Assembly: GCA_010909165.1 (NCBI GenBank)
Contig: VJWM01000025.1
Location: 1,550,001-1,614,000 of the forward strand
DNA: 64,000 nucleotides
From: Anthoceros angustus
Lineage: Eukaryota; Plantae; Anthocerotophyta
Reading direction: 5' to 3'
Positions 11,979 to 40,059 of the stretch are shown one piece after another (within the stretch, counting starts at the first letter, position 1; the number at the start of each line of letters is the position of its first letter). The notes under the pieces are model-generated. The model was not told where the DNA came from and searched no databases. It was given only the letters and a program-made list of their open reading frames with translations. Made by a program: the position numbers and the translations under genes.

Positions 11979-14900
11979 TCACAGATGTTGCATCTCCGTT
12001 TCAGGGTAATATGTGCTGGAGCTATTCCACAAAGAGGAATGAGAACTTAGCAGGGACAAGCTGTCACATGAAGTATCAACATCATCCTGCGCATTCTGTG
12101 GCTGCACACAATGGCGAGCATCATTCGATTGGGGAGCTCGACGCGTCCGAGTCCCAGTGAAGCCAGAGGGTTTGCAACTCGTTCCGGACCTCCTTCATTT
12201 CGGGACGATCTCGGGATCTGGGGCCAAGCACCTGACAGCCAAAGCGGCCACACTGGCTATCGATGCCTCCCATTCGCTGAACTGTGCGTGTCCGCCAACA
12301 CAGGGTCGATCAGTTCTTGCCACTCCCCTGTCCATGGCAGACAGTGCCAGGGTCACCAAGCTAGTAGCTTCATAGCCTCTCCAAAATCGATAGCAGGCTT
12401 TGAGGAGATGAGTTCCAGTAGCACAACGCCGAAGCTGTAGACATCGCTCCTGGGAGTCAGCTGGAAGCTGGAAAAATACTCTGGATCAATGTAGCCCATG
12501 GTGCCTTGGATCGCCAGTGTGGAAACATGAGTAGCTGTCTTGCTGGGAGCTAGCTTGAGATGCCGAAATCTGCCACCTTGGCATTCAAGTCGTCGTCCAG
12601 GAGAATGTTGCAAGACTTGATGTCTCGGTGGAAGATGGGAGGGTCGGCAGCCGAATGAAGATAGGCCAGGGCATCGGCAGTCTGTAGCGCTATGAGAAGG
12701 CGTTGCCTCCAGCTGAGGGAGAGAATCCTTGTCTGGTCCCTTCCAGATGTTCCTTCAGTGTGCCGTTGGGGACGAACTCGAAGACGAGGAGAGCAATTTT
12801 GTTCTCCATGGAACAACCCAGCAGCTTCACCAAGTGTCTGTGACTCACTCCCGACAGAATCCTGACCTCATTGAGAAACTGGTGCTTGTACTGGGGAGCC
12901 TTCACGCTTGCCCTTCTTGATGGCTACCGCTGTGCCATCGGCGAGCTTGCCACGGTACACTGTGCCGAAGCCGCCGGCTCCGATCTGGGCCGAGTCCGAG
13001 AAGTTGGAGGTGGCTTTGCGGAGTTCCCCAAGGGCATCACCGTCACCGTTTGCCTCTAGCAGCGCGTGGCAATCAAGTCCGCATCTTGCTGGTGCTTTTG
13101 GAATACACTCTCCATCTCCAGAGGGAGAACAAACAACTGGCCGCGCAAACCAATACAGCGGAAACCACTATTGCCACAACCACCCACACGTTGATACCAT
13201 GGCCAGCAGGCGCAGCAGGTTGATTCCTGCAGGGCGGAAGAGGTTCGCCGCAGAGGCCCGGATTGTCGGCGAAGAAGGTGGCGTCACTGAGATCCGGACG
13301 CAGGCCACCTGGGATGGGTCCTGAGAGATTGTTGCCGGACAGATTGATGGTTATCAGGTTAGGCAATGCAAAGAAAAGCTTACCAGGTATTTCTCCTGAC
13401 AGATTGTTGTGGCTAAGGTCCAAGACTTGCAGAGTGAGAGGAAAGCTGTCTGAATGGGGCCGGACAGCTTGCTGTGGGATGCGTTGAAGTGCAGCAAGCT
13501 CGGCAGACCTGTGAAAAGCTCAGCCGGCATCGTTCCCTCCAAATTGGTGTTGCTCAGGTCCAACACGCCGAGAGTGGCGGGTAACCTTCCGGGAATGGGG
13601 CCAGATAATCTGTTGTTGGACACGTTGAGGAAGGTCAAATTGGGCATGGAAAGATAGAAAAGCTGGTCCGGCACTGTTCCGCTCAGGTTGCAAGATGCAA
13701 GATCCAAGATCTGGAAGGAGTCCAGACTCGTTGGCCTGGAACAATTGATGCTGTCCGGCAATGGTATGCCCATGAGATCGCTACCGCTAGATGAAGTTCC
13801 TCCAGCGGGAAGGAGGAACAGGAAAATCGGAACAACTTCTCCAGCATACTCTGCAAAGGATTGGGGAACTTCTCGGAAGGTGTCATGTTGAAATCGTTGT
13901 GGCTCAAGTCCCAAACTGGCCCGACCACCAGGTTCTTGTTCGAGAGCAAGTTGGTAAGGTCCCAGTGAATCGGTTGCCTTGCACTCGGATACTGTTGGAC
14001 GAATTCAGGTTGCCGAGAACTTTGATGAAGTCACCTGACAGTTGGTTGTTTTTAAGCCACAGAACCTCAAGAAAATAGCGGCCCGAGGCGAAGGAGGAAG
14101 GAAGAGAGCCATTCAGCTGATTGTCACTCAGATCCAGGGTAGATAACCAATATATGACTTCACTGCTGGTGTCGAAGGGAGGGTCGGGTATGCTGCCAAC
14201 CAGAGAATTGCTGGAGAGATTCAAATAAGACAGCCATGCATATAGCAAAGTGGCAGGAATGCTGCCATTCAGCTCATTTCCAGACAGATCCACCCATCCA
14301 ACCCCTCCCGCCGCGAAATCCGGAGGGATGGGGCCAGACAAGTTGTTGTGGGACAGGTCCACGTGCGGCAGGTCTGGGAACAAGGACGGGATGGGGCCTT
14401 GCAGATCGTTCCATGACAGGTCCAACACCTGAAGACTGGGAAAATTGAGGCCTGCGAAATCCGGTAACTGTCCCCCAATTTGGTTCCGGGAAAGGTTCAG
14501 CCGTTGCAGAGCAGATTGAATCTGGAAGAAGGAACTGGTGAAGTTTGTGAAGCTGTTTTGGGCTGCATCCAGGAATTGCAGACTTGGGGCAGAGGGCACC
14601 TCCCGCTCAGATTGTTGCTGGTGAGAGAGACATGGGTGAGGCGTGTTAGCCCTTCCAAATTGGGGACGCTTCCGTTCAAGAAGTTATCAGACAGATCCAG
14701 GCTCACGAGGTTGGTGAGACTGCTCAATTCCTCAGGGAAGCCTCCAACCAGTTCACTGTCAGCAAGAGACAAACCTGCAGCTCCCACAGCCCCTCCAAGT
14801 TGTGGAGAACGCTCGTCACAGACCCATACCCGGTTGGCAAGCCCTGTCCGCATAGAGGTAATGGAGGTTGGGACCTAGGCTGAAAGAGCCTGCGGTGACC

Positions 14901-15424
14901 CAACTTCCGGAAACATCCAGCCATGTCAGCCCAGTGAAAAAGGAAAGATTAGAAGACCAATTTACATACAAATCGGAATTGGACGACAGGTCCAACGCTC
15001 GGAGGCTTCCCAGACTACACAACTGGTCGAGTGGGGCGGACAGGGAGCAAGCGGAGAAGTCGAGCCTGAGCACAGCGGACTCCGAATCACACAGCACCCG
15101 AATCCAACCACACGGCGTATCGTCGCTAGAGTTCCAGCTCCCGACGTCGGCCTCACACTCCCCCAGACCTCCCTGGTTTTCTTTCGCAAACTTCAACAGG
15201 ACCTGTCCATCGCGGGAGAGCTCAGCACTTACGTTGTTTCCGAATCGGCATAGGAGCAAACTGCACATCATGAGTGACGCGTATATCCCCAAGCTAAGGC
15301 TGGCACCACCCCCGCCAAAACTGCAATCCACAAGCCGCCCTACCCTAACCTGCATGGCAAAGGCCTTCATCACTATATGCAAATCGACACTAACAACAAT
15401 TTCTCCTGCGGCGAGCAACGACAC
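11979..15424 (-). CDS. LRR receptor-like kinase copy 1 (signal peptide, ~20+ LRRs, TM, RD Ser/Thr kinase); frameshifts probably sequencing errors
   Basis: ORFs 14816-15424, 13904-14599, 13073-13423 (TM), 12690-12905, 12550-12816 ([12 protein letters not shown]) and 12353-12613. First likely ATG near 15370. Confidence 0.85.
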
Positions 15425-39700: not shown

Positions 39701-40059
39701 CTGAGCACAGCGGACTCCGAATCACACAGCACCCGAATCCAACTACACGGCGTATCCTCGCTAGCGTTCCAGCTCCCGACGTCGGCCTGGCAGTCCCCCA
39801 GATTCCCCTGGTTCTCTATCGTAAAATTCAGCAGGAGCTGTCCATCGCGGGAGAGCTCAGCACCGACGTTGCTTCCGAATCGCCATAGTAGCAAACTGCA
39901 CATCATGAGTGACACGCATATCCCCAAGCTAAGGCTGGCACCACCCCCGCCAAAACTGCAATCCACAAGCCGCCCTACCCTAACCTGCATTGCAAAGGCC
40001 TTCATCACTATATGCAAATCGACACTAACAACAACTTCTCCTGTGGCGAGCAACGACAC
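36722..40059 (-). CDS. LRR receptor-like kinase copy 3 (two LRRs shorter)
   Basis: 801-aa ORF 37654-40059 through TM; 37440-37868, 37300-37566 and 36722-37363 give the kinase. Breaks fall in G runs. Confidence 0.9.

Follow-up and report, generated by a model that had tools for sequence, protein, structure and literature searches.

A young tandem array of leucine-rich repeat receptor kinase genes with evidence for positive selection in ectodomain loops

Why would neighboring copies of a receptor kinase gene that scarcely differ in their flanks, transmembrane (TM) segments, and kinase domains differ so strongly in their ectodomains? This question is raised by a 64,000-nucleotide stretch of DNA (contig VJWM01000025.1, positions 1,550,001 to 1,614,000; hereafter the window), for which a first-pass annotation had described three tandem receptor kinase copies with divergent leucine-rich repeat (LRR) ectodomains. 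We consider it likely that the locus is a young array in which the loops of the ectodomain have been under positive selection and form a diversified recognition repertoire. The array itself, the contrast among domains, a ratio of nonsynonymous (dN) to synonymous (dS) divergence (omega) above 1 in the ectodomain, and a distinctive distribution of the variable sites are directly supported by the observations described below.

Self-BLAST and six-frame open reading frames (ORFs) revealed a tandem unit of 10-15 kb with one minus-strand LRR receptor kinase gene per unit, and 54 kb of the window contain five copies or fragments (A, B, C, D, and Z) with flank divergence of 1.5-3.5%. The copies and the landmarks used here are:

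11979-15424, minus strand: copy A, a full LRR-TM-kinase gene of ~1161 codons in which no intron was seen
26450-29909, minus strand: copy B, a full gene; codons 1-549 are an intact ORF as assembled
36722-40059, minus strand: copy C, a full gene; an intact ORF of 801 codons spans the ectodomain and TM
51634-53648, minus strand: copy D, truncated; retains the kinase, TM, and LRR16-24 only
1-3746, minus strand: copy Z, a rearranged fragment of B-like sequence (98% identity to B) in which part of the ectodomain is internally duplicated
7693-11978, no strand: repeated flank of the unit with SPT5 KOW and PPR E-motif fragments, used as the neutral comparator
37877-37944, minus strand: TM helix of copy C
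36917-37748, minus strand: kinase domain of copy C, RD, WAK_LRK10L type

The earlier inventory of three full copies holds for A, B, and C. It was incomplete with respect to fragment Z and truncated D, and it did not register that C is without two LRRs or that each copy carries frameshifts. Pfam identified SPT5 KOW1/KOW2 and PPR E-motif fragments in the flanks. Transposon insertions set the units apart, as does a ~1.3-kb stretch that is confined to A (9811-11108) and D (about 49563-50833) and absent from B and C. These differences among units indicate that the array is genuine and did not arise by duplication during assembly, and the flank comparisons identify it as a young tandem duplication with a neutral divergence of about 2-3%.

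Sliding windows of pairwise substitution divergence along a five-copy alignment revealed values of 0.3-4% over ~4.5 kb of flank, kinase, and TM, and of 6-20% in the ectodomain; the low values agree with the few percent that the first-pass annotation had judged by eye. The sharp rise begins near 13500 in A, 28030 in B, and 38180 in C. Non-coding flank divergence between units is 0.015-0.035, and dN in the ectodomain (0.11-0.17 over codons 67-555) is 5-10 times as high. The three peptide stretches that had been given as examples of the variation can all be located in the alignment after frame correction, at codons 418-435, 446-460, and 150-163. The indels and aromatic substitutions reported with them were also recovered: in-frame indels of 3-12 bp are located in the variable loops, and aromatic residues (F, W, Y, H) occupy 17% of variable sites and 8.7% of invariant sites. 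The hypervariable tracts are 76-85% identical at the nucleotide level among A, B, and C, and those of B and its twin fragment Z are 97-98% identical. The near identity of B and Z suggests that the hypervariable tracts are not intrinsically noisy.

Over the same ectodomain codons, dS is 0.04-0.07 and omega is 1.9-3.3 by NG86, LWL85, YN00, and maximum likelihood, with bootstrap Z values for dN-dS of 3.6-4.8 and Fisher p values of 4e-5 to 4e-3. Omega is 1.7-2.8 when codons within 3 of a gap are removed. Since the ORFs of B and C are both intact as assembled over codons 67-535, the B-C comparison yields omega above 1 independently of any frame correction. Our own GY94-type codon models, fitted on a three-taxon star tree of A, B, and C, gave an ectodomain M0 omega of 2.55 (2dlnL 23.7 against omega = 1), and M2a was favored over M1a (2dlnL 118) with 14% of sites in the class with omega above 1. 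In the TM-kinase-tail part, dN is about 0.01 and omega 0.27-0.41, and M0 on the kinase partition gave 0.28, significantly below 1. M2a also returned a positive class on the kinase partition (0.5% of sites, with an absurd omega); this derived from a cluster at 13058-13063 in copy A and was treated as a local error. Ectodomain differences at codon positions 1/2/3 number 61/38/28, 64/59/34, and, for B-C, 77/70/38, whereas position 3 leads in the kinase. Codons in the hypervariable tracts tend to retain their third base (e.g., TGG/CGG/CCG, TCT/TAT/GTT, AAT/GAT/GGT), and 34 variable sites have three states. Collectively, these substitution patterns support positive diversifying selection on the ectodomain.

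Nearly all of this signal falls in two patches, one in LRR1-4 and one in LRR12-17:

14781-15046, minus strand: hypervariable patch 1 of copy A, LRR1-4, codons 127-217
13806-14251, minus strand: hypervariable patch 2 of copy A, LRR12-17, codons 395-548
29262-29531, minus strand: hypervariable patch 1 of copy B
28286-28730, minus strand: hypervariable patch 2 of copy B
39403-39681, minus strand: hypervariable patch 1 of copy C, 76-83% nucleotide identity to the other copies
38419-38871, minus strand: hypervariable patch 2 of copy C, with 79-84% identity to A, B, and the B-like fragment

Variation is moderate in LRR5-11 and only slight in LRR18-24 (dN 0.02-0.05). Variable sites were placed structurally by DSSP string, by blocks of predicted local distance difference test (pLDDT) score, and by position within the repeat. 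The variable fraction is 0.08 at hydrophobic core positions, 0.04-0.08 at x5, x7, and x8 (that is, 1-2 of 24 repeats), 0.38 at x2 and x3, 0.26 at repeat positions 12-17, and 0.41 from position 18 to the end of the repeat. The earlier observation that variation lies in loops between the LRR cores is thus borne out. Omega is 3-5 in the repeat tails, significantly above 1 as the first-pass reading had anticipated for the loops, and about 1-1.4 in the LxxLxLxxNxL segment (highly conserved segment, HCS), while dS is similar in the two (0.045-0.057 in the HCS, 0.046-0.078 in the tail). Of the 20 sites whose posterior exceeds 0.95, 15 occupy repeat position 12 or beyond, and x5, x7, and x8 contribute none. 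Residues in DSSP strands vary less than those elsewhere (0.14 vs 0.29-0.30), and variability is inversely related to pLDDT (rho -0.58). We also noted 17 N-glycosylation sequons common to A, B, and C and 11 that are copy-specific, several of the latter inside the hypervariable patches (ectodomain codons 157-184 and 354-479).

A contrast of this kind could instead be produced by concerted evolution, in which the copies would be old, their flanks, kinases, and TM segments would have been homogenized by gene conversion or unequal crossing-over, and the ectodomain would have escaped with its old divergence. The sharp divergence boundary inside the gene would be expected on that account, and ectodomain NG86 dS (0.045-0.07) is nominally 2-3 times the flank divergence. 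Site patterns group the flank as AD|BC and parts of the kinase as AB|CD or AC|BD; these conflicting groupings indicate that the history of the units is mosaic, and the presence of all three incompatible four-copy patterns along flank and kinase suggests some sequence exchange there. However, at four-fold sites (in codons with the first two bases unchanged) divergence in the variable ectodomain is 0.020-0.028, compared with 0.015-0.024 in the flank, and is indistinguishable from that of the flank and the rest of the gene, kinase included. This suggests that the ectodomain is not older than its surroundings, nor imported, nor left unhomogenized. In addition, LRR cores alternate with tails every 24 codons without extra silent change, and the hypervariable codons retain the third base, whereas an older ectodomain would have raised silent divergence throughout. 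We regard concerted evolution as an improbable source of the ectodomain differences.

A mutational mechanism targeted to the loop-coding segments, either short templated conversion from diverged donors or indel-associated error-prone repair, would account for the clustering of changes in tracts of 8-15 codons that also bear small indels, and for the many codons with two or three differences. Such a process, like untargeted hypermutation, predicts that third positions are affected equally, but positions 1 and 2 dominate. A search of the window for donors of the hypervariable tracts matched only the allelic positions of other copies, and omega stays above 1 away from gaps. Each lineage also has its own changes (40 unique to A, 63 to B, and 89 to C), and these are interspersed (runs test p = 0.04), which suggests that exchange among A, B, and C within the ectodomain was at most minor. 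We consider this mechanism decidedly improbable. The first-pass annotation had proposed either positive selection or sequence exchange as the driver; the omega values in the loops favor the former, and the interspersed changes, four-fold sites that are not raised, and lack of a donor in the window speak against the latter within the ectodomain.

As assembled, no copy is a single ORF. Copy A has ~14 small frameshifting indels and the 6-nt cluster at 13058-13063, which reads as a stop (TLLE to TRC-stop) and persists after frame correction. Copy B has homopolymer frameshifts 3' of its intact 549-codon ORF, and copy C has four in its kinase part (37878, 37853, 37470, and 37308). Among frameshifting small indels between copies, 25 of 41 are homopolymer length changes, 20 of these 25 in C or G runs. 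B and its near-identical twin fragment Z1 differ by 22 indel events and 32 substitutions, proportions that are characteristic of sequencing error. Across the window, homopolymer-length errors (e.g., at 37878, 37853, 37648-37653, 37470, 37308, and 12879-12884) fall mostly in C/G runs and look systematic, and some are common to several copies.

We aligned to copy C short-read contigs from two same-species runs (X1 and X2), one a DNA run and the other, X2, RNA-like in that its contigs have GT..AG-type joints on the minus strand and end at the 5' end of the gene where the DNA run goes on. Contigs of X2 fill each of the four kinase frameshifts of copy C, supplying the frame-restoring base at 37306, 37466, 37848, and 37875. 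One X2 contig over the six-C run at 37648 has the insertion at 37466 as its sole gap and retains the in-frame state that only C holds there. All of the in-frame states are present in contigs, although in no single copy of the window. When the in-frame state is chosen at each indel, every copy becomes a single intronless ORF of about 1161 codons. Frames were reconstructed by dynamic programming over indel events, with stops minimized; within the GC-rich kinase, where the wrong frame is stop-free, three choices had to be imposed. A majority consensus was ruled out as the reading frame, several homopolymer deletions being common to most copies. Homopolymer errors of an unpolished assembly most likely account for the frameshifts seen in the window, and genes A, B, and C are thus probably intact.

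A decaying pseudogene array, in which dead copies would owe their ectodomain differences to drift under relaxed constraint and to assembly noise, would fit the frameshifts in every copy, the in-frame stop cluster of A, a DFS motif in the kinase of B, the truncation of D and Z, and the gene fragments in the flanks, but it is highly improbable given that drift predicts omega of about 1 everywhere rather than 0.3 in the kinase and significantly more than 1 in the ectodomain, that the indels have the character of sequencing error, that RNA-like contigs have all in-frame states, and that the hypervariable tracts, being identical in B and Z, are not noisy.

After frame correction, the proteins fit the definition of plant LRR receptor-like kinases (RLKs) of the RLK/Pelle type, having an LRRNT with LRRs, a single TM, and a catalytic Ser/Thr kinase. 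The long ORFs match Pfam LRRNT_2, LRR_1, LRR_4, and LRR_8, and the 3' ORFs match PK_Tyr_Ser-Thr/Pkinase. Twenty-four plant-type LRRs of 20-40 residues each were mapped, the TM helix lies at codons 754-776, and the kinase shows GxGxxG, VAIK, HRD, and DFG. The HRD motif occurs in every copy and identifies an RD kinase, and the non-RD state of known pattern-recognition RLKs was not found. Copy B reads DFS in place of DFG at 27038-27040; this and the 13058-13063 cluster of A are each either a real lesion or a local error.

Best matches to the kinase C-lobe are liverwort LRR-RLKs of about 900-1050 aa (Calypogeia fissa, 60-61% identity; Riccia fluitans, 56%; Marchantia, 52%), followed by WAK-type proteins that carry GUB_WAK_bind, EGF, and WAK_assoc domains. 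One Marchantia relative is named MpRLK-Pelle_WAK_LRK10L-4. By these matches, from a database search with the C-lobe only (159 aa, without a tree), the kinase is assigned to the RLK-Pelle_WAK_LRK10L clade. Pfam did not find a GUB_WAK/EGF ectodomain, and the ectodomain comprises LRRs only, unlike WAK proper. The 801-aa ectodomain had no match above 34% identity in a large protein database, and a 217-aa query over hypervariable patch 2 returned three distant matches only; with no close homologs from these protein searches, no extra paralogs were added to the selection tests. A Calypogeia protein is collinear with the whole ectodomain (31% identity over 666 aa), including an irregular, island-like stretch after LRR17. 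An AlphaFold2 model of the ectodomain of C (pLDDT 84.8) forms a plant LRR superhelix in which that stretch has low confidence (pLDDT below 50), and the best structural matches by Foldseek are the ectodomains of BRI1, BRL, and HAESA (E 4e-27).

How the array could have come to its present state can be outlined. Each gene, apparently intronless, encodes a single-pass receptor kinase with a signal peptide, an LRRNT, ~24 LRRs, the island-like stretch after LRR17, a TM, and an RD kinase. After duplication, purifying or weak selection has probably maintained the kinase, the TM, and the membrane-proximal LRR18-24. In the patches LRR1-4 and LRR12-17, replacements probably became fixed over and over, separately in each copy; nearly all of them lie in the part of the repeat that varies (position 12 to the end, and x2 and x3 of the next repeat), together with small in-frame indels. 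The probable outcome is a set of receptors that share one signaling module and differ in their outer loops, in other words a diversified recognition repertoire. Rapid replacement confined to outer loops is a hallmark of arms races and of recognition repertoires, and it is familiar from immune receptors of flowering plants. The loops may be a binding or contact surface, and a partner that itself varies, for example a ligand or inhibitor of microbial origin, may be the driver; the sensing of microbes or symbionts proposed in the first-pass annotation would be a candidate role.

A bolder version of this idea is suggested by a conserved concave face combined with hypervariable outer loops. Ligand recognition would then differ from that of known plant LRR receptor kinases: the irregular loops of LRR1-4 and LRR12-17 would be variable contact sites akin to complementarity-determining regions, or surfaces that escape inhibitors, on a constant scaffold and signaling module, and the array would be a germline-encoded repertoire of a bryophyte lineage built on a WAK_LRK10L kinase. 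We regard this version as unlikely.

Several observations weigh against a repertoire of positively selected recognition loops. Hypervariable residues do not occupy the solvent-exposed strand positions (xxLxLxx), where of the x sites only x2 and x3 vary, and the concave-face positions x5, x7, and x8 are conserved, unlike in classic hypervariable LRR receptors; the ligand site may thus lie outside the variable loops. The codon alignment presumes that indels of lengths other than 3n are errors. With only three full sequences, the site posteriors are naive and power is limited, and multi-nucleotide changes (two differences in each of 21-36 codons) can bias site-model tests upward. The contigs that cover the kinase derive from a copy other than C (one has the 141 bp that are missing in C), and no contig aligned at 95% identity or more over most of the hypervariable tracts of C, so that C's ectodomain is only putatively present in that sample.

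The same contig pattern limits what can be said of expression, on which the first-pass reading also depended. RNA-like contigs of the same species cover members of the family in frame, which suggests expression at the level of the family and not for A, B, or C specifically. In the same-species DNA run, no contig at 95% identity or more was found on most of the C ectodomain at 38549-39533, and C's upstream flank at 40076-40443 has a 100% match in contigs of that run. The gap in coverage could be due to presence/absence or allelic variation, or to filter dropout.

The diversified repertoire that we favor has precedents in angiosperms, where LRR domains evolve faster than kinase domains and under positive selection, especially among recent tandem paralogs (PMC5380761 citing Fischer et al. 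2016; PMC10588794), and where four motif positions predominate among selected sites in lineage-specific expanded genes (PMC5380761). Lineage-specific immune clusters of LRR-RLKs and LRR-RLPs, of the Xa21/LRR-XII and Cf-4/9 type, likewise consist of recent tandem paralogs with a conserved kinase and fast-evolving LRRs under positive selection. The four predominating positions of expanded angiosperm genes are probably solvent-exposed strand residues; here, in contrast to Xa21/LRR-XII and Cf-4/9 type clusters, the selected sites are in repeat tails or loops and at x2 and x3, not at x5, x7, and x8. The array's kinase belongs to the WAK_LRK10L clade and is RD, whereas that of the LRR-XII type is non-RD. 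Judged solely by the nearest relatives of the kinase, the host is a land plant and, unlike that of the Xa21/Cf-type clusters, probably a bryophyte.

The OAK cluster of Arabidopsis thaliana comprises structurally hypervariable tandem RLKs whose extracellular domain is in part unusually divergent, with positive selection or gene conversion proposed as the cause (PMC3136440). It shares with the array the restriction of divergence to part of the ectodomain, with equivalent cytoplasmic domains. In OAK, however, the hypervariable part consists of a malectin-like domain and no signal emerged from whole-protein dN/dS, whereas here it is LRR and omega over the whole ectodomain is significantly above 1. 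Liverwort RLK-Pelle_WAK_LRK10L LRR-RLKs have the same LRRNT, LRRs, TM, and kinase type and a C-lobe that is 52-61% identical, but by identity they are distant relatives and not orthologs. The predicted superhelix is of plant type and of similar length to those of BRI1, BRL, and HAESA, and the island-like insert between late repeats appears to be placed as in BRI1; sequence identity to these receptors is only 24-28%, and no ligand relationship is implied. Our literature searches returned nothing specific on such arrays in bryophytes or on LRR/WAK_LRK10L receptors, their copy-number dynamics, or selection on them. The kind of system is therefore known, and what is new is the lineage, the kinase class, and the loop-centered pattern of sites.

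Although the copies are divergent at only about 2% of silent and flanking sites, as many as 30% of the replacement sites in their ectodomain loops are different, and this concentration of replacements in young copies narrows the putatively selected residues to about 50 positions. Little of cell-surface immunity has been charted beyond the flowering plants, and the array would offer candidate recognition receptors. The site pattern also bears on whether LRR receptors diversify via convex or lateral loops rather than via the concave sheet. Given systematic homopolymer errors, calls of "pseudogene" in this genome need care, and "dead gene" calls in the assembly, including those for the SPT5 and PPR flank fragments, may partly be artifacts.

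The remaining features concern the individual units. Copy C is without LRR21-22 through a clean in-frame 141-bp deletion between repeat units at 38182 (corresponding to 13430-13569 in A and 27909-28048 in B), and contigs of both X1 and X2 contain the undeleted form of this site. In copy Z, positions 201-2663 are 98.1% identical to 27357-29850 of B and positions 2655-3746 are 98.5% identical to 27729-28824 of B; Z also has numerous additional small indels relative to B. The ectodomain of copy D is broken near LRR15/16, where it adjoins a PPR repeat array, and its kinase N-lobe has a 17-bp deletion as assembled. The PPR array (53648-61100) has a period of ~312 bp and units that are 73-81% identical. 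Within the SPT5-derived flank, RNA-like contigs skip 90 and 130 bases (35345-35436 and 35494-35625, with CT..AC ends), which reflects either parent SPT5 mRNA aligned to the fragment or a flank that is transcribed and spliced. A very GC-rich, low-complexity repeat that codes for Arg, Gly, and Ala (17044-18000) occupies the edge of the insertion that separates units A and B.

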